Source: Entomortierella parvispora E1425
Lineage: Eukaryota > Fungi > Mortierellomycota
Direction: 5' to 3'
Assembly: GCA_020891255.1 (NCBI GenBank)
Contig: BQFW01000003.1
Span: 1,178,001-1,242,000 of the forward strand
DNA length: 64,000 nucleotides
Shown: piece after piece, positions 47,872 through 59,785 of the stretch
How the letters are laid out: the number at the start of each line of letters is the position of its first letter
Position numbering within the stretch: position 1 is the first letter of the stretch
Translations under genes and position numbers: made by a program
Notes under the pieces: model-generated
The model's input: the letters and a program-made list of their open reading frames with translations, nothing else
What the model was told of the DNA's origin: nothing
Database searches by the model: none

Positions 47872-50800
47872 CCGAACAATCCTCCTTCTTCCATCCAAAA
47901 TGCTCTCTCTCGTGGTCGTAGCAGATCCCCCTCTCTCCTTTTCTCTCTCCCGTCTTGCTCTCTCTTTTACTCTCCCCTTCTTTCCCTGGCAACGAAAGGA
48001 GCCAACGACCAACCGCCACCAGGGTTCTCTCTGTCATGATAATCTCTTAATTGCGCCGTCCGAACCGGAGCATCAAAATAGCCAATCTGGAAGCCTGCTT
48101 TTGTGGGCAGGGACTGGCGCGGACATGATACGATTACACCCATGCGCCTTCGCTTCGCAGACACGAGCAGCCCCAGTGTGACTCATTCTGGTTTTAAACT
48201 AGTTTCTCCTATTAACGCCTTCTCTTGTTCTCCACCGATGCCCCCGCAGATGCCAAACCAGACATTTGCACCAGCTGCGAGTTACTCCAGATTCCTTGTA
48301 AGTGTCGGAAAGCCCGTTGTGGCAAAGCAACACTGTGATCAGGGGATGGATGCACAGATGGAGAAGGATGCATAGCCTAACTAAAAAATCCCCATGGATT
48401 TCTGACGCTCTCGTGTTACGCTGACTAGGTCAATATCTGGACCCAACGAAGAAGCGAGGACCACCCAAAGGAGCAGGGCGTAAGTTCTTGGAAGGCTCTT
48501 ATGGCTATTGTTTTCTGTGCTCTAGTACTGGCAGGGGATAAGTGCTCACTCGGATATATAATTTTTCAAATATCAATAGGTTACATTAATGCCATTGAGG
48601 ATCGGTTGCATCGCATGGAGGCAATCGTAGGAGGCTTGGTGGAGGATGAGCCAGCAGGAGGTCCAGGTGGCGACGCCATCCCCCCCATGGACGCCTCTGG
48701 CGCCATTAATCCAGCAGCTCTTCTTGTGCCTGCCAACAACACTTCCAGTACACCAGCCAAACCAAGGAGGCGGAAATCAACTAAAGGAGCAAAGTCAATG
48801 CAGGTGGATGCAGATGATACTGGCTTGCGGCCGTCGCCAGAGACACAGCCACCACATCAGCTTCAACAGCAGCAGAACGTCATGCACGACTACAGCATGG
48901 AGCAGCAGCAGCAACAACAGCAGTTCCTTCATCAGCAGCAGCAACAGCAGCAGTTCCAGACAGACATGACTTTTCAGCATGCCCAGCAGCCCCCGTTCCT
49001 CCAACATCAGATGGGTCTTCTTCAACAGCACCCTAACCGCCTCGACTTGCAGCTGGACTCGAGTCAAAGCCCTGATTTGGCCTCGCAAACGCATTCGGAT
49101 GACGTACAGCGGACTGTAGACCCCCAGATGATCACCCCTCTCCACCAGGACATGTTCCGGGAAAGCAACATGGCGTCGTTTAATTCACCTTCCCCCATTC
49201 TTGGTTCGGACCATTCTCACAGTGACTACAACATCCCATCTCCCAATAACGACAATCTCCCACATCTGGGCATGCACACGCCACCCTTCCAAGAATTGGA
49301 TGATCTGGAAGAGGATATGGGTCATTTGACCTTGGACCACAAGGGCCACGAGCGGTATGTGGGAAAGTCTTCTCCCATGTTCTACAACCGTCGCCACTAT
49401 GGAGGATTCTCGATTCGGGAACGGGAACAACCTGAAGCTCGAAAGTTTGTCGAGAACCCAGACTTGCCATCGCCAGAGGTCATGACCAACCTTTTGAACC
49501 TTTATTTTGCGTATGTGCACCCTTTTGCACCCGTCTTTGTGTGGTCAAAGTTTCTGAAGCGGCTACAGAATCGGGATTACTCTCCCTCGTTCCTCTGTTT
49601 GTTGAACAGTATCTTTGCCTTGGCCTCGCGCTTCTCGGACGACATCTCGCTCAGGACCGACCCAACAAAGCCCGAAACGGTCGGAGTCGCCTTTGTGGAC
49701 AAGGCAAAGGCTATTCTTGATACCATCTACGATGCTCCCGACATGTACTGCGTTGGAGCACTGGTCCTGCTTTCATATCAGCAGATGGGAACCGGTGGCG
49801 GGTACCGAGCCTGGATGTTTATTGGACTTTCTATTCGCATGGCCCAGCACTTGGGCCTGAACCGAGACTGCTTGAAGCTTAACCCGCATATGCCCACCCT
49901 TGACCGTGAGGAGCGCAATCGCATCTGGTGGTCTTGTTTTGTGGCGGATCGACTCGTCTCTGCGTCGTTTGGACGTCCTCAGGTATATTTCTAGAGGTGA
50001 TAACTGACTGTAATCACCCTGAATCGGTTCATTGTCTGATACCTATTGTTTTATTGCGTCGTACTACCAAATAGGGAATCAACGAGCATGACGTCGACGC
50101 CACCTACCCAGAGGGAATCGATGAGGAAAATATTCAACTGGAGTATAGACTGGACAACGCCACGTCTTTACTGACTGGACCCTCCCCTCATTCAGAGATG
50201 AACTTTGTGTATCTGGCTTCGTTGACCAGGATCATGGGCAGGGTCATGGTCAGTCTTTACAGTCCCTTGTCCAGAGCAACGATGCAACAATCCTCGACCT
50301 CGCTCATCAACCCCGCCCCTTTGGAGCAATTGGACAAGGAGCTGACGGATTGGCTTTTGACGCTCCCGCCTCATCTTCAATTCCGTTCTGTGCAACAAGA
50401 GCCCGGAACGTTTGTGTGCACTTTGCACATGACGTTTTATGCCACGCTCATCTTGTTGCATCGTCCTTACAGTCACCAATCAGCTCGTAACTCTCCTGGA
50501 GATGCGTCGATCTCGCTCTCTATTTGTACCTCGGCTGCCAACAATACCATCGAAATGGCCAGTAACCTAATGAGGACCTCGGACGACAGCAGAGATGTAC
50601 CCAGACTGAAGTGCTTGCTGCACAGCTCTGTGTTCATCTTTTTCACGGCGGGCATTGTTCACATTACCAACTGCACCAGCATGGATCCAGTACTGGCCGC
50701 ATCGGCCAAGTTGCGAACGGTAGAGACTCTCCGCTGCTTGTCTGTGATCGAGGATGTCTGGATGAGCGGAAAGTGGTGCGGAAACAACATTAAGCAACTG

Positions 50801-52399
50801 ATCAAGGCCCGTAACATTGAGCTTCCCTGCTCCGTTGAAGGTATGGATGAACGAAGCATTCGGTGCTTGCTCTCTTGTGTCTGTTGATGGCCAGTTCTTG
50901 ATCCTGAGCTAACAAACACAATATCCTTTTTATTAGGCTTTAAATACACTATTCGTAATGGCGCGGATCCATTGTCGGCCATGAAGGGTCTTGTCCCCAG
51001 CCAGATGGACATTCCAACCCAAAATGTGATGGCGATTCCCAAGGAACAGTCGTTTGCATTCGATGTGGATCAGATCATGGGCTATTACCAGGCTCCCGGG
51101 ATCCGCCATGCAGAGCCACTGGGTCGCAACTCGCGTCATTTCTCGCCTACACCTTATTTCAGTCCAGTGTCCCCCCATCATGCCCAGCATCAGGTCCGAG
51201 CCCACCCTGGTCTGAGTCAAGGACATGCACCCCTTCCACGTCGACCTCGGCAGACTAAGAACACCTCCCCTTCACCCGCGGGATCTGTTTCTTCTTCTTC
51301 TGGAGCCGCTGCCCCTGGAGGGAACGCCAATGGACTCTTGCACGGAGCCATGTTCAATGGTGCTCCAACTCCAACAGCCGATATCACTCTGGTAGGAGCT
51401 GCAGGAACTGCGGACCCCAGTTACTTTACGTCGGCCCAGATTGATCCTTTTGCGGCACCTGGTTCAGCTACAGTCGTCAATGGTCTTTCGCCTCAGCATC
51501 AGCATCATCAGCAGCTTCATCAACAGCAACAGCACCAAAAGTCACAGCAGCAATCAGGTGATGTCGATGGCAACTTTGCCATGTATCACAACCCGTTCTC
51601 TTCCACGATCTGGAACTTGCCCGCGTCGATGGATAACGAAGAATGGATGTTGTATATGCAAAATGGCGGCGGCGCTGGTGCAGGCAACGCTAATGCTGGC
51701 GTCAACGCTAATAACAGCAGTAATAACAACAGCAACAGCAATAGCAACAGCAATTCCGGAAACTCTGGTACCCCTGCCACTGCTGGTCATAGCAGCGGTC
51801 ACCCGGACAACAGCGGTACCAACAACCTGTCTCGCAGCAACAGCAATAGCAGTACCACGAGCGCTTCTGGATCGGTCAACAATAGTACCGCCAGCAACAG
51901 CAGCAATGTTGTTGTGAAACTGGAAGGCAGCAATGGCACGGTGGGGAATGTGTTCAAGTCGGAACCGCCTTCACCCTTGTTGGTGGATAGCAACACTTCG
52001 TTGAACAAGGTCGTCATGAGCTGCGCTTCTGGAAGCAGGATGCATCCTTTGGCTCAAAGCGTTACCCGCGGAGAGCTGTTGGGAGGAGGAGGAAATGCCG
52101 CCAGTGGTGGAAGCAGCGGAACGAGCAGCAGTGGAGTCAGCGGAAATGAACTGATGAACAGTCATTCTGCAAGTGCTTATTCCCCACAGCGACAGTCTAC
52201 GTCCTCCCCCACGTTACAGCAGCAGCAGCAGTACCAGCAACAGCAGCAACAGCAACAGCAACATCGGTCCATGTTGCCCACTCAGAACGGATCTGCCGAT
52301 TACGACTTTTACCTCCAGTCTGGCGCTTCCTCTCCCACTGCCATGCAGCAGCAACAGCCCCAGCAAACATCTGTAGTCTTGCATGAATGGCAATCATAG
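47456..52399 (+). CDS. Zn(II)2Cys6 (Gal4-type) transcription factor with a Fungal_trans middle domain and Q/N/S-rich tail; exons 47456-47498, 47610-47628, 47734-47750, 48250-48297, 48429-48479, 48580-49982, 50075-50840, 50937-52399
   Basis: The spliced cluster reads RQRVTKACDNCRKKKIKCDAKPDICTSCELLQIPCQY...KKRGPPK. Middle-domain motifs include LYFAYVHPFAPVF, AWMFIGLSIRMAQHLGLNRD and ERNRIWWSCFVADR. Confidence 0.92.
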
Positions 52400-53095
52400 T
52401 TGATCTGTCATTTCAGGTTCCTCCGCATCCACTCGTTGATATTCTTCATCTAGTTTTCTCCCCCCTCACAACTGCGATCATCAACATGATCCCAAAGCCG
52501 GAACTTTTTTTGTTTCTTGTGATAATCTCTTTCCTTACCATCCCCCTTCTCTCTTTCCTCGCCATCCCTCCATCTCTTTCCTCGAACTCTCTTTCTACGT
52601 CTTTCTCATCGTTCCTATTCTCCTCATCTTCATCCTCATTCTCATCATCCTCTATCAGTAGGAGGAAATTTGTATTTGTAGACCTTTTGCTATTTTTTGC
52701 CCCTCTTGTATCCATAAAAAAAAAAAAAAAAAAAAAAACCTGGTGTGTGTTGTACGAAAACGAATTGTGGAGTTGCAAGAAACCAAAGAGGAAAACAAAC
52801 ACGGGACAAGTATTTTTGAACGACCTTTATTTTGAACATTCATCAGATCAAGAAGCAATGTCATGTATTCTGTTATTCTGTACATTTTTGACTTTATTTT
52901 TGGTGTTTAATAACAGATGTATGTATGTGCAAAGGCTATGGGGGGGGGGGGGGTATGTGGGTGAGGGCGAGGAGGGGTGTATATGCTTGTCGGGTGGAGG
53001 GGTGTTATTGTTCAATGTTGATTCTTTTCAGTCCTTTTTTTTTCCTGTCAGATTTGTCGGTTTTGTCGGTAACGACGACGATGACGACGACTTGT

Positions 53096-56000
53096 TCAGA
53101 TTCTAAACGCAAAGTGTTGCTCCTTTCGGAACAACCGATTGACATTCGACCGTTGACGATCTTCCTCTTGCTCATCGGCGGCCAAAGAATAGGCAACGCC
53201 TGTCGTATCGGTCCGACCTGACGACGGTGACAATGTCGATGTCGATGTCGATGTGGTCAAGGACAACGAGAGACCAAGCGTGCTGGATCCAGCCAATCCG
53301 CGAAAGGACAGATTACGTTCCTTGTCCCGCAGCTGACGCACGAGTTCCGGGAGCGGGACAGGCGCCGGCGCCATGTCGAGCAAGAGTGTTTCCAACCCCA
53401 TGGCCACTCCCTTTCGGTCCAACTCTTCCCAACAGTTCTTTTCAAACTCGGCGGCCGGGAATCCATAGACGCCCGTCATGGCCGTTCGGACATGGACGCC
53501 GTTCCAAATCACCACATTGTCCACATTGCGCGTCAGAGACCGTCCGACCATGAACAAATGGCCATAGTAAAACAGACAGATCAGTCGGATCATCAACAGC
53601 GGTCCCAGTCGCGCCGTGAACGGGACCACGAAATACCGAAACTCGTGTTTGATCCACACTCGGCTACCGCTTTCCGCTGTGATGTAATGCCCCGGGACGC
53701 ATACATAGACAAAGTAGCACGCCAGTCGAACATCAAAGGCGTAGCCCAGCGTCGCATCCGGCATCGGTCCCAATTTGATGGGTTTCCCAGAAAAGGCACC
53801 CTTGGTCGCGCCTGCCTTGGCCTTGCTCGTGCACATGGCAGAGCACATGGGGCATTTCAGTTGTGAATCCTTGGCTTGGAACCACTCCTTGATACAGCCC
53901 TCGTGAAAGATGTGACGACAACCGTTCAACTTGACCACTCTTTCCGGTGCAAGATGACTAGGTGAAGGCGAGACCATGGGTTGTGTGTCCTGAACCTCCA
54001 TCTCATCCTGACAGATGGGGCATTCCGGTTTCGAAGGTGCAGTCGAGGACGACGAACAGCTTTGTTCCTTGGCCAACATTTTGGCATCCGCCGTGACATA
54101 GAGATTCTCCATCAGGTTGGATCCCATCGAAGCCACTTCGGCCTCTCGCACGGCGCGGTTAAAGGTCACGGTGCCCGTACGGCTGAGCAAGTCGCGAATC
54201 GCGGGTTCGATGCTGGGGTCCATGTCGTCCCAGCATTCCTTCAAAAGCGCAGCCACATCCAGGTCCTTCAATGGATTCTTTTCAATCTCTTCGGCGGTCG
54301 TGGGCGATTTGAGTCGTATCAAGCCAGGCGCCAGTTCACGGGATTGAATCCTTCGACTACGGCTCTCGGATTCCAAAAAGATCCATTCTAGATAGTCCTT
54401 GAACTTGAAGAGACGTCGGTTCGCTAGTCGACGTTGCGCCGTGATGGGCCAAAAGATGGGCGATGCCATCGGCATATCAAAGGCCATCGTCGGCGCAATC
54501 TCCCAGAGCTCCTTGACATGGCTCAGACCGAGTTTTTGAATCTTCTTTTCGACGTTTGTGGCCGTGGTGGTATGGTTCAATTCGAGCAGCGTGGAGGACA
54601 GTAACTGAGAGGTCATCAATGTGGGCATCAACAGCTCTGCCACGACCTGGGGCCAGTTATGAAGACTGACCGTCTGCAATTCCTTTTCCTTCAGTACAAA
54701 CTTTTCGGCGGGATTGGTCGACCCCATTTCAGCACACTCCCTCTCTGCTCTCTTGATGCGAGCCTCCATCTCCTGATCGGTCAACGTCACCAACAATCTC
54801 TTGCTGAGCGACAGCGTCCTGGAACTTTCAGACTGGATCGAGGCCTTGTTGCGTGAATCCCGCTCAGCGTCCATCCGGCATTGTTCCTCATACGACTTTT
54901 GAAGCGTGAGGATAGTTTGCGCCTGCGCCCAATGCTCCGGCGTCCAGGAGGCCCTGTCCTCTAATTTTTCCCTGAACTGCACCTCGAGTTGGTGAAGACG
55001 TTCTCGGAGAGGGTGGGCCGCCACCTGAAAGTCATGACTGTGGTAAATGTCCATGCCTCGCAAGGTGGCCTGCTCCTGCAGGGAACGGAGGTCCCGCTCC
55101 ACCTGTTGCCCCAGGGCCCGGATCCTCTCAATCTCTGCCCCGTTGTCCTGTATCGTGACAAGAAGACCGCTGCAATTGGGGATCTCGGCCATGAGCTTCT
55201 CAATGTTGCTCTTTTGAGCCGCTCGCGATTGCGCCGCCAAGGCTTGGTCGCTGCCAAGGCGGTCCTGAAGGGTCTTGATGTTCTTGGCAGAGTTCATCAG
55301 GAATGTCCTGCTCACATCCTGCAGGTAAAAGTGCGTCGGGGGTGCGGATGCTTTGGTGACTTTGATCAGCCATTCGGGACGCCCTGGTATACTGAGTCTC
55401 CGCACTTTGATGGTCGAGACATCCATTTCGTAGATCAATTGCAGCACCAGGGAGAACGCTGCGTCGGGTTGATGCCATTCCTCTAATTTGACATTATCAG
55501 TGTCCGGAGATGCGTTGGCGTCCATGGGCACGGGGACGGTGCAGACACGCTGGACGTCAGATATTGACGAAGGATAGAGTCCTGTGCCCCGGAAGAGAAC
55601 TTGATGTTGACTCAGTCGATAGAAGCAATCTGGGTTGTTGGAGGTCTTGAAGTTGATCACGCACAAGGGTAACACTTGCGACTTTTCCATACTGGTTTTG
55701 AGAGTACCCAAGGTCGGTAAAAAGAAGGTCATGAGTAGATTAGTAAGCATCCTGGTTCCTGTATCGTCCGTGGACCCTTTGCGTTAGAATGAATGAAACG
55801 GAAAAAAAAAAAGAAAGAGCAAAATTCTTACACAACCCATTCCTTGAATACATCATGTGCCACTGCAGAGTCGTATCCTGGAGGCAAAAAGTTGGACGTT
55901 GGGTACAATCGTCGACAAGCCTTGTCATAGGGCTCAACCATGATCTTGCCCAGAAGGACACAGCAAAGAATGATCGAGTACGTTTGGCCCATCATTGTCT

Positions 56001-56634
56001 GGGCATCCGTGTACTGCATGCACTTTTCGATAGAGTCTGAGAAATAAACGCCTTTTCCATAGTTGGCACGAATGGTCATCTTGGGGTCGAGTCCGTTATG
56101 GAGAATAGACGAGATTTTGCTCTGCTGTGTGCCATGGAACAGGATTTCGTCCCTGAATCGAATCTCGGGCTCCTCCTGGTCCTGGTCCTCGTGCTCAGTC
56201 AAACTGGCCTCCGAGGCCGCCAGAGGTGTCCTCAGACTCGCCTCTTCCCGCGCCCGCTGTCGGTTTTCCTGTGTCTTTCGCATGCGTTCTCGGCGGTATC
56301 TTTTAGCAGCCTGATAGCGATCCCAGATGTCATGGTTCCGGAGGATGTGGACCGATTCAATTGAGAAATCAGAGTGCCGTCGTGTGTGGCTATAAAAGTC
56401 GTTGGCGACCGTGCTGGCCAGCTTTGGGTAGGCTTGAGGATCGAGATTGAGGAGTCGGGTGCCGCCATACTGCCCTGTAGAGGAAACCGCAACCGATGCA
56501 TCAGCGTGGGGACGAGAAGTTTCGGGTGGGTCGTGAGGGATAGCAAGTGCATTCTCCACATTAAAGGGCAAATCCTCGAAAAAGTCTGTGAACAAGTCTG
56601 AGAACTCGTCCTTGCTTGTGTGAATAAGGGCCAT
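53096..56634 (-). CDS. 1132-aa fusion of a PARP-like ADP-ribosyltransferase domain, a helical region, a RING-H2 finger and a Deltex C-terminal (DTC) domain; exons 56634-55832, 55691-53096
   Basis: ART motifs: ILFHGT, YGKGVYFSD, KEWVV|MEKSQVLP. RING-H2: CPIC...CRHIFHEGC...CPMC. DTC: HLFMVGRSLT...VIWNGVHVRT...YGFP...EELDRKGV. The phase-2 intron 55692-55831 (GTAAGA...CAG) joins the two ORFs in frame. Confidence 0.88.
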
Positions 56635-57498: not shown

Positions 57499-59416
57499 TT
57501 ACTCGTCCTTGAAGCGCTTGCCAAGAGCAGGCGATGGCGCCGAAGCAAACGAACGAGGTGAGGTAGGGCGAGAGGACGAAGGCAAAGATGATGTGGAACC
57601 TAACTCGGCATGCTCACTCAGAGGGCTACTTGGCAAAGAGAACGAGCCACCAGTGGTCTGTTCAAGGAACAGGCGACTTGGGCGAGCACGACCCTTGGCC
57701 AAAGAACCAGCCATCTTGCTGCTACCTGCATCCTCATCAATCCTGCTCAAAGACATGGATACGGAGTTCAGGAACGAGTCGCGCTTCGAGGGAGACGCCA
57801 AAGGAGACGAAAAGGCGGCATTTGAGCTGCTGCCCTGGATGAGAGACGAGCCAGCCTCCGAATCCAAGTTCAAGGTTGTCACTGAGCGAATAGAATCACG
57901 GCTGAGTCGGCGAGAGTGACGGTGGCCGTGGTGATGAGTGGTCGAGTTGCGAGGAGAGCTGTCGGGCGAACTCCGTGGGGAGACACGAGGAGAGTTGACA
58001 GTTGACAAAACTTCCATCCAGGACTCGTATCCCTGCCATCCATTCCAGCTCTGACGGAACGCGGCATTCTTCTTTGGTGAAGAGGTGACTGAAGTGGGTG
58101 AGGAAGGTTCCGAATGGGACTCCTTGCGCTCCTCTACCTGGGACTCGACAGAGACCACAATGACATCCGCCATCTCCACAGTGTCGTCCTCCTGGTCATA
58201 GCTGTCACTCAAATCCCACTCCTTGCTGTTCTTGAAACCAACGAAGTCGTCCTCGTGAGCTGCATCAAAAAGAGTCTGCTTTTCCTGGTGGTTCATGGCG
58301 TCGCCGAGATCGTGGATGACATGGGAGGCCTTGGCATTGTTGTAGTGCTGCTGAGGCAACATCGAGGGCAAGAAGAAGGAGCCAAACCAGAAGGCAACGA
58401 CAGCATATCCTGCACCGCCCACGAGATCAACGACGTAATGGTGTCCAAGGTACATGGTGGCCCACCAGATCCAGAAAACATAGCCGACAGCAAAGGGAAT
58501 AGAGCGGGGTCCAAAGATGTAGACAAGGAAGAAGGCCAATTGCCAGGCACAAGCCGAGTGGAGCGAAGGGAAGGCACCAAACACCATGGGCGAGGCTGTG
58601 AACGTGGACTTGTACATGTTGGTACCCAAGATGTCGTCAACACGGGCGAGTCCGCCTGGATCGCCAGGCATGGTGTAGGTGGCGGGCTCGAGTCCTCCGT
58701 AGCGCGATTCATACCCTAATTAGAACAAAAAATGATTGTCAGTCTAGACATTCTTTTTTTCTTCCTTGGAGGATGCAGTCCACCGTCATGAATTATATCA
58801 TATTGCCAAATTGGACAGACAACTTACATGGTGGTGCGCAAGGAAAAAACAATTGAGTCAAGACACCGGCAACGTTCATGTATCCGAAGGTCCTGGCAAA
58901 GACAGGGAGGGTGCCAGGAGGTCCAAAGAACACAATCAGGACGGCAGTAATGACGGGAAGCACAAAGTGAAGAACACCGTAGGGCATCCAGGCCAATAGG
59001 TCCTTCAAAGGAGTGGTGGCGGTGGCGAGCTGTTCCGAGATGTTGCCTCCATAGAGAATGTTCTCGAGTGCTGGCAAGACCGAGGTAAAAATATGAGGTC
59101 TCCAGGACGAAGGAATAAAGCGGCAGCAATAAAAGAGAATCAACCAGGCAGCGATAGCCAAAAAGGGCAGCATGAACGGGCGGGTCCTCTTCGGTACTAG
59201 GAGGCCGACTGCAAAAGAGGCGATGGGCAGCTTAAACCAGACAGGCTTGTCCATGATGAAGTAGCAAAAGGTGAAGACCACAAAGAGGAAAACGTATTGA
59301 AGGTCATAGAGGGTGTAACGGTGCTTCCGAAGGGGTCGAATGGTCGAGACAAGAGCGGCCTTGGTGGCCTTGTGGATCTTGCGATACCGCAAGTTGACGT
59401 TTGTGACGGAGAGCAT
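57499..59416 (-). CDS. AUR1: Inositol phosphorylceramide synthase catalytic subunit (aureobasidin A resistance protein), 601 aa, with a long Ser-rich C-tail; exons 59416-58828, 58715-57499
   Basis: Motifs include LAWMPYGVLHF, FGYMN, FPCAPPWY, PGGLARVD, FGAFPSLH and TMYLGHHYVVDL. Confidence 0.95.
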
Positions 59417-59785
59417 TGTGGTTTTGACGTGCACTGCAGACGGGTGGTCGCGGAGAAAGAAAGGGAAGGGAGAAAGGGTTAATGCAACAGTGCTGGTGTG
59501 TGCATTTGCAGGTCAACGGGCCGTTGACGATGCAGTGTGGGGAGAGGGGCGAGATTGGAATGAATGGAGCGTATGACCGAGAGGACGATCAAGAGGCAGT
59601 AGACGAGGTGAGAATAGCGAGCGGAGACGAGAGTAGAGAGGAGAGTAGAGAGAGAGGAGGAGGAGAAGGATGATGATGAAGGAATGAACAAGCAAGCAAA
59701 GTGAGCAAAAGAGGTCAATGTGAACAAGAAGAGAGCAAAGGAAATAAAAAAAAAAAGAAGCGGCAAAATGGGCCTTGTCTGGTCC

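Follow-up and report, generated by a model that had tools for sequence, protein, structure and literature searches.

A spliced gene encoding a PARP-RING-DTC protein

The DNA analyzed here (the window) is a stretch of 64,000 nucleotides from contig BQFW01000003.1 of the soil fungus Entomortierella parvispora E1425. On its minus strand we found a gene for a protein that carries a PARP-type ADP-ribosyltransferase (ART) domain in its N-terminal part and, after a long middle region, a RING-H2 domain followed by a Deltex C-terminal (DTC) domain (Table 1). One copy of such a PARP-RING-DTC gene is present in the window. The coding region consists of two long open reading frames (ORFs) on the minus strand (55828-56634, 268 amino acids; 53096-55750, 884 amino acids), and the intron between them has a TACTAAT branch-like site approximately 45 nt upstream of the acceptor. 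Intron removal gives a coding sequence of 3399 nt, and the product is letter-identical to GenBank EMPS_02444, which is annotated as "hypothetical protein".

Table 1. Features of the PARP-RING-DTC gene of Entomortierella parvispora; positions are counted from the first letter of the window.
Feature	Positions	Strand	Details
Whole gene	53096..56634	-	ATG at 56634, TAA at 53096-53098; 1132-residue PARP-RING-DTC protein
Exon 1	55832..56634	-	residues 1-267, then two bases of codon 268; bulk of the PARP domain
Intron	55692..55831	-	140 nt, phase 2, GT..AG; GTAAGA donor, AACCAG acceptor end
Exon 2	53096..55691	-	residues 268-1132 and stop; last PARP strands, coiled-coil middle, RING, DTC, tail
PARP/ART catalytic domain	55640..56466	-	residues ~57-285, split by the intron; Pfam PF00644, fold, residue conservation
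PARP triad codons	H167 56134-56136; Y197 56044-56046; E265 55840-55842	-	
Middle region	54059..55597	-	residues 300-812, family-specific
RING-H2	53843..54025	-	residues 824-884; zf-RING_2 35.0 bits; aligned to DTX1/DTX2 RING
DTC domain	53375..53782	-	residues ~905-1040; PF18102 34.9 bits
DTC codons	W997 53504-53506; H1001 53492-53494; E1024 53423-53425	-	
C-terminal tail	53099..53374	-	residues 1041-1132; mostly low-confidence/disordered, Ser/Thr-rich

The intron falls where the PARP fold forms its last strands. Comparison with other proteins supports its removal. At the junction, FKEWVV is followed by MEKSQVLPLCVINFK; this arrangement is kept in 22 of the 24 aligned homologs, in which the block reads FKEW[IV]V.EKSQ[IV]LPLCVINFK, and the two remaining gene models are gapped at this place. 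Human PARP12 (IFVIFEKHQVYPEYVIQY) aligns gap-free across the spliced junction, so exon 2 supplies the last PARP strands, and exon 1 alone would encode a truncated domain. The Mortierella alpina ortholog (approximately 41% protein identity) has a 140-nt GT..AG intron in the same codon and phase, with GAGTGGATAGT before a GTGAGT donor and CTACGAAAAG after an acceptor ending in AACAG. An earlier note on this DNA, made from the letters alone, had claimed one spliced gene with a phase-2 intron and a product of 1132 amino acids; the identity with EMPS_02444, the kept junction, and the M. alpina intron all agree with this claim.

The public runs under the species label are of DNA or of unrecorded type, with no RNA run listed, and four runs whose type is unrecorded yielded no contig that crosses the gene. 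The splice thus rests on comparative evidence. A wrong merger of a small PARP gene with a neighboring gene for a RING-DTC ligase would fit this situation, and some homolog models are clearly mis-merged with their neighbors (L24e, Asp protease). However, the last PARP beta-strands (EKSQVLPLCVINF, aligned to PARP12) come from exon 2, the phase-2 intron position is the same in M. alpina, and the 140 nt between the ORFs leave no space for a promoter. We therefore regard such an annotation artefact as scarcely credible.

A second in-frame acceptor was also considered (AG at 55752-55753). It would define an 80-nt intron (55752-55831) and insert 20 residues (MLTNLLMTFFLPTLGTLKTS; MLTNLL...KTS) in the C-terminal strands of the PARP domain. 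We rejected it because the insert breaks the conserved block and is found neither in any aligned ortholog nor in PARP12. An isoform that uses this acceptor could be minor or non-productive.

Conserved residues of the PARP and RING-DTC modules

On the spliced protein, the Pfam profiles of PARP, zf-RING_2, and DTC all scored above their curated cut-offs (26.7, 27.3, and 25 bits, respectively). For the PARP profile (PF00644), the score was 57.3 bits, and 53.5 bits with the full protein. The structure was modelled with AlphaFold2 on an alignment of 24 sequences (mean predicted local distance difference test score, pLDDT, 73.9; predicted template modelling score, pTM, 0.64), and the model was compared by VIA with approximately 48,000 PDB representatives. 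Both the PARP and the DTC folds found matches in the PDB. Model residues 57-285 matched PARP13 with a VIA Z of 20.2 (root-mean-square deviation, rmsd, 2.4 Å; 168 of 171 residues), and Z values of 19-20 were obtained against PARP15, PARP10, and tankyrase (TNKS). Foldseek also supported the ART fold, with E approximately 1e-9. The N-terminal PARP-fold ART, the RING, and the Deltex domain that the earlier note had read from the translation were thus all recovered, by profile as well as by fold comparison.

H167 and Y197 of the catalytic triad are present in all 24 aligned sequences, and E265 is present in all 22 that cover this site. G168 and Y208 are also invariant in the family alignment. E265 stands opposite PARP12 I660, the third triad position, which is Ile in PARP12. 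Judged from the alignment and the model, the domain has the full H-Y-E triad and a compact PARP10/12/13/15-like fold, without a helical regulatory domain. The profile match, the ART fold, and the triad place it in the PARP/ARTD family and predict NAD+-dependent ADP-ribosyl transfer. An H-Y-E triad by itself does not discriminate between mono- and poly-ADP-ribosylation activity.

Another invariant residue of the Mortierellaceae family is C205 (56020-56022), which is also Cys in the fusion proteins of Geosiphon and Blyttiomyces described below (an "EKC" or "KKC" motif). We take this to be the position of PARP1 Ser904, a nicotinamide contact. C205 may be a marker of a fungal subgroup or a redox-sensitive site. 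Together with the fact that the nearest structural neighbor is the inactive PARP13 domain, the Cys at the Ser904-equivalent position would suit a PARP domain that is a non-catalytic NAD+/ADP-ribose-binding module, comparable to those of PARP13 and PARP9, and that targets an ordinary RING ubiquitin ligase (E3), leaving only the ligase half enzymatic. Inactive PARPs, however, have lost triad residues: PARP9 has Q-Y-T, and the PARP13 entry matched here is an H810N/N830Y variant in which they are restored. In this family, by contrast, H, G, Y, Y, and E have stayed invariant despite deep divergence. The invariant triad thus disfavors a non-catalytic PARP domain, which we consider very improbable.

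In the C-terminal half, the eight zinc ligands of the RING (C3H2C3; C825, C828, C859, H861, H864, C867, C881, and C884) are invariant in the 24 sequences. The first and last of the zinc-binding cysteines map to 54022 and 53843, exactly the limits that the earlier note had given for the RING-H2; its bounds for the DTC (approximately 53405-53770) lie within a few codons of the domain as mapped, and the DTC has the residues of an ADP-ribose (ADPr) pocket. The first two of these cysteines flank I827, which is likewise invariant and is presumably the ubiquitin-conjugating enzyme (E2)-contact position of the RING. Structure comparison supports the full DTC fold: model residues 907-1031 matched the DTX3L DTC (3pg6) with Z 12.9 (rmsd 2.1 Å; 122 of 135 residues), and residues 789-1033 matched the DTX2 RING-DTC (6y22), also with Z 12.9. 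The RING-DTC region aligns as one piece with the RING-DTC of DTX1 (6y5n, chain residues 21-229; E=1.3e-10).

Residues that bind ADPr in DTX2 were mapped by carrying the crystal-chain numbering (offset 387) onto the RING-DTC alignment. In DTX2, R535 and S567 contact the ADPr diphosphate, W578 and H594 stack on the adenine, and H582/E608 are proposed to act as a catalytic dyad in activating the 3'-OH of ADPr (PMC7442474; PMC7615817). The equivalents in this protein are R953 and S986 for the diphosphate, W997 and Y1010 for adenine stacking, and H1001 and E1024 for the dyad. R953, S986, W997, H1001, and E1024 are found in all 24 aligned sequences, and position 1010 is aromatic throughout (Y in 14, H in 6, and F in 4). 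DTX2 S568 is replaced by Leu, at a position where the contact is made via the main chain. With the RING ligands, a DTC domain directly after the RING, the ADPr pocket, and the His-Glu dyad all present, the protein is assigned to the Deltex type, and E2-dependent ligase activity is predicted from sequence and model.

The conserved DTC dyad would also accommodate an enzyme directed at nucleic acids, in which the PARP domain, the RING-DTC, or both act on DNA or RNA ends in a DNA-damage or antiviral (mycovirus) role. DTX3L ubiquitylates both single-stranded and ADP-ribosylated nucleic acids, and DTX3L and DTX2 are reported to act on nucleic acids or on the ADPr attached to them (PMC11467253; PMC11460948; PMC10810221). 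The Pfam scan, however, detected no nucleic-acid-binding domain in the protein, and we consider this role decidedly improbable.

Middle region, distribution, and gene neighborhood

Between the PARP and RING-DTC modules lie approximately 500 residues of lineage-specific coiled coil. In the models, this middle region begins with a small beta-alpha-alpha-beta-beta-beta unit (317-392), continues with long helical hairpins that run antiparallel (393-567), and then becomes mixed alpha/beta (569-800). No Pfam family matched residues 300-812 even at E<=10. When the region was modelled separately with AlphaFold2 (pLDDT 76.5), Foldseek gave no significant match in the PDB (best E 8.7e-3, to coiled-coil proteins), and comparison with the AlphaFold Database clusters gave nothing significant (template-modelling score <0.4). 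An ESM-Atlas look-up with the small domain at 300-400 reached a best score of 0.71, which is below lead level. The middle region is kept within the family and is absent from the distant PARP+DTC fusions. Judging from the models, it is probably a lineage-specific stalk or an oligomerization/interaction module that holds writer and ligase together. The C-terminal tail ends in a conserved motif, RLFxxxQxxxF. Across the whole protein, the Pfam scan found no WWE domain, no macro domain, and no family other than PARP, RING, and DTC, so the ART is the only ADP-ribose-related module besides the DTC. The claim of the earlier note that the ART takes the place of the WWE reader thus holds as a description of the architecture, with no WWE found, and not as a demonstrated evolutionary replacement.

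Word-indexed searches returned 47 proteins, all from Mortierellomycotina (Mortierella, Podila, Linnemannia, Entomortierella, Gryganskiella, Lobosporangium, Dissophora, Gamsiella, Modicella, Haplosporangium, and Lunasporangiospora). PF00644, RING, and PF18102 are present in nearly all 47, and many bear the automatic name "putative E3 ubiquitin-protein ligase dtx2/dtx3l". There are at least two or three paralogous subfamilies (P0030/32/33; P0031/34/194/195; and P0037 from Actinomortierella). Ribosomal L24e is an extra domain in some of the homolog models (P0031 and P0034), and Asp protease PF00026 is one in others (P0035 and P0186). An Asp protease of M. alpina has its own gene approximately 1.4 kb downstream (L001 7734-9281), with another called gene between. 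These models are probably annotation merges of nearby genes and not real fusions.

A word-indexed search with the RING-DTC region found Mortierellaceae only, and the distant fusions surfaced solely in an exhaustive profile search of 1.84 billion representatives. This search gave approximately 14 full-length family representatives and then PARP+DTC proteins without the middle region. The latter include a PARP-RING-DTC protein of Geosiphon pyriformis (Glomeromycotina; 659 amino acids), fusions in the chytrid Blyttiomyces helicus (654 amino acids) and in Mesostigma viride (1198 amino acids), an MMETSP protist transcript with RING-DTC-TAZ-PARP in one mRNA, and metagenomic proteins with both domain orders. 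The Geosiphon and Blyttiomyces fusions keep H-Y-E, and the DTC set of Ser, Trp, His, aromatic residue, and Glu is kept in most fusions. In the reverse-order fusions (P0079, P0073, and P0134, which comprise the protist transcript and metagenomic proteins), RING-DTC comes first and PARP last, and one of them has a TAZ zinc finger between the two; the PARP/DTC pairing may thus have arisen more than once. The search for the architecture across Mucoromycota and other eukaryotes, which the earlier note had left to be made, therefore finds it to be widespread in Mortierellaceae, and unique neither to this genome nor to Mucoromycota.

In a quick maximum-likelihood tree of RING-DTC regions (31 rows, with most non-fungal rows of unknown taxon), Mortierellaceae, Geosiphon, Entrophospora, and the chytrid Borealophlyctis form one group (Shimodaira-Hasegawa-like approximate likelihood ratio test, SH-aLRT, 97). 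This small tree is only suggestive of a fusion that predates the Mortierellomycotina-Glomeromycotina split.

The gene upstream is a member of the PAP2_3/PAP2 superfamily (57499-59434, minus strand, two ORF pieces). A PAP2_3 gene is also found upstream of the M. alpina ortholog (L001 433-2466), and this common neighbor indicates that local synteny is kept across genera. Downstream is a Fungal_trans (PF04082) transcription factor gene (48501-52399, plus strand); the ORFs at 50972-52399, rich in poly-Q/Ser/Asn low-complexity sequence, are probably its later exons. An AT-/homopolymer-rich spacer (52500-53000; GC 0.40) separates this gene from the 3' end of the PARP-RING-DTC gene. Neither of the immediate neighbors (PAP2_3 and Fungal_trans) has a link to ADP-ribose or ubiquitin.

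Putative coupling of ADP-ribosylation and ubiquitylation

By analogy with animal enzymes, we infer the two enzyme activities and the link between them, as well as any role in the cell (defence and DNA damage being candidates), and we give a probability of roughly 60% to the interpretation that this single polypeptide couples an ADP-ribosyltransferase to a Deltex-type ubiquitin ligase, which would write ADP-ribose and then ubiquitylate. Using NAD+, the N-terminal PARP domain would ADP-ribosylate itself or a target. The DTC pocket would then bind the adenosine-proximal part of ADPr, with W997 and the aromatic residue at 1010 stacking on the adenine and R953/S986 contacting the diphosphate, and the adjacent RING-H2 would bring in a charged E2~ubiquitin. 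Finally, the H1001-E1024 dyad may activate the ADPr 3'-OH for attack on the thioester, which would produce an ester-linked ubiquitin-ADPr (Ub-ADPr) hybrid mark; alternatively or in addition, the E3 may ubiquitylate lysines of the ADP-ribosylated carrier protein. For animal DTX enzymes, ADPr binding by the DTC and attachment of ubiquitin to ADPr or to its carrier have been demonstrated (PMC7442474; PMC7615817). With both catalytic centers invariant in the family, the self-contained ADP-ribosylate-then-ubiquitylate enzyme that the earlier note had proposed is the best-supported mechanism.

Several points weigh against this interpretation. Every member of the family is known from gene sequence and predicted structure, and the long linker between the modules means that coupling in cis is not guaranteed. 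Within the PARP domain, the invariant Cys where PARP1 has the nicotinamide-contacting Ser904 may affect NAD+ binding. Within the DTC domain, the PF18102 match covers only the C-terminal profile positions 79-133 (55 positions), and the equivalent of DTX2 H594 is a Tyr (Y1010), which is aromatic yet not identical.

The same domain evidence would also describe a self-limiting sensor, in which the PARP domain mainly auto-ADP-ribosylates, the RING-DTC reads this mark in cis, and the protein ubiquitylates itself as an NAD+/stress-dependent timer or degron instead of marking other substrates. PARP7 is reported to carry degrons of the ADP-ribosyl type, and tankyrase to carry Ub-ADPr made by Deltex (PMC12402299; PMC12759070; PMC12407064). 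Sequence does not separate self from trans targets, but the large conserved middle region suggests interactions beyond self-regulation, and we consider a purely self-directed enzyme rather unlikely.

As far as we have checked, the PARP-RING-DTC architecture is visible in public databases and undescribed in the literature. Neither a PARP-DTC fusion nor a fungal Deltex was described in the literature examined, in which Citarelli 2010, Perina 2014, Otto 2005, a 2026 review of fungal ADP-ribosylation, and reviews of Deltex and ADPr-Ub do not mention them; an earlier mention in the ART natural-history literature is possible. A 2026 kingdom-wide preprint on fungal PARPs searched only PARP1 and PARP-Ubc, so PARP-RING-DTC proteins were not covered. 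According to a 2026 preprint on DTX3L-PARP9 co-evolution, the ubiquitin and ADP-ribose systems became linked "during metazoan evolution"; the "DTX-like sequences in distantly related lineages" that it mentions are left unassigned. The functional PARP-Deltex link in animals was already known, and the gene models are public. Dozens of Mortierellaceae proteomes in the databases contain the architecture.

In animals, the writer (PARP9/14, PARP7, or tankyrase) is one protein and the ligase another, and for this reason it is difficult to dissect how they are coupled. A covalent fusion made by nature, which has both catalytic centers conserved over a whole fungal subphylum and which recurs in other eukaryotes, provides independent evolutionary "Rosetta-stone" evidence for one working unit. 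It also pushes the PARP-Deltex link beyond Metazoa, gives biochemists and structural biologists a compact single-chain model, and fills a gap in surveys of fungal ADP-ribosylation, which list only PARP1 and PARP-Ubc. More tentatively, and with the odds somewhat against it, the writing of Ub-ADPr marks may be no animal invention: a stand-alone write-and-tag enzyme may have been present in early-diverging fungi before Mortierellomycotina and Glomeromycotina split, possibly since the chytrids, and similar fusions may have arisen repeatedly in algae and protists. If so, this would be the simplest natural one-polypeptide system that installs ADPr and esterifies ubiquitin onto it, and it might serve a non-self or genome-surveillance pathway in fungi that host endobacteria and mycoviruses.

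Among known systems, the fungal PARP-Ubc proteins (fPARP2, clade 6: RWD-ART-UBCc) are similar in that a fungal PARP is joined to a C-terminal catalytic domain of the ubiquitin system. In these proteins, however, the partner is an E2 (UBCc), and the PARP is PARP6/8-like, usually without the Glu. The Pfam scan found no UBC family match in the protein studied here, and its nearest PARP sequences and structures are PARP12, 13, 14, and 15, not PARP6/8/16. The lack of UBCc and the different PARP subgroup indicate that this protein is not a fungal PARP-Ubc. The Dictyostelium U-box-Macro-PARP (DDB0232928) also has an E3 and a PARP on one protein, and the RNF146/tankyrase system links a reader-E3 (WWE-RING) to ADP-ribosylation. 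DDB0232928 (U-box) and RNF146 (WWE-RING) have no DTC, so ubiquitylation of ADP-ribose itself is not predicted for them. Legionella SidE effectors combine ADP-ribose chemistry with the attachment of ubiquitin in one polypeptide: a mono-ADP-ribosyltransferase (mART) domain ADP-ribosylates Arg42 of ubiquitin and a phosphodiesterase (PDE) domain makes the phosphoribosyl link, without a ubiquitin-activating enzyme (E1) or E2. Their folds and chemistry are unrelated to those of PARP-RING-DTC, and the likeness is one of analogy only.

DTX1, DTX2, and DTX4 (WWE-WWE-RING-DTC) are closer, in that the RING-DTC aligns end to end with that of DTX1 and the ADPr-binding residues are kept. The protein studied here differs from them in having no WWE, in an N-terminal module that is a writer and not a reader, and in Tyr, Phe, or His at the position of H594. 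The lack of WWE and other Pfam matches and of a fold match for the middle region points to a DTX-like RING-DTC ligase that is not orthologous to any of the named DTX paralogs of animals; "dtx2" and "dtx3l" in the databases are names given automatically.

In its working, the protein may be likened to the DTX3L-PARP9/PARP14 and PARP7-DTX2 partnerships. It shares with DTX3L-PARP9 (with PARP14) the physical coupling of an ART fold to a RING-DTC E3. Its DTC fold matches that of DTX3L and retains the His-Glu dyad, and the closest relatives of its PARP domain are in the PARP10/12/13/14/15 group. The animal pair differs in being a non-covalent heterodimer encoded by head-to-head genes; the triad of PARP9 is degenerate, macrodomains are present in PARP9, and DTX3L has the KH-like domains D1-D3. 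No KH-like domain was recognized in the middle region of the fungal protein, in which the beta-alpha-alpha-beta-beta-beta unit was not compared singly, and no macro domain was found. In the fungal protein, one chain carries the PARP domain with its full H-Y-E triad first, a coiled-coil linker next, and the RING-DTC last.

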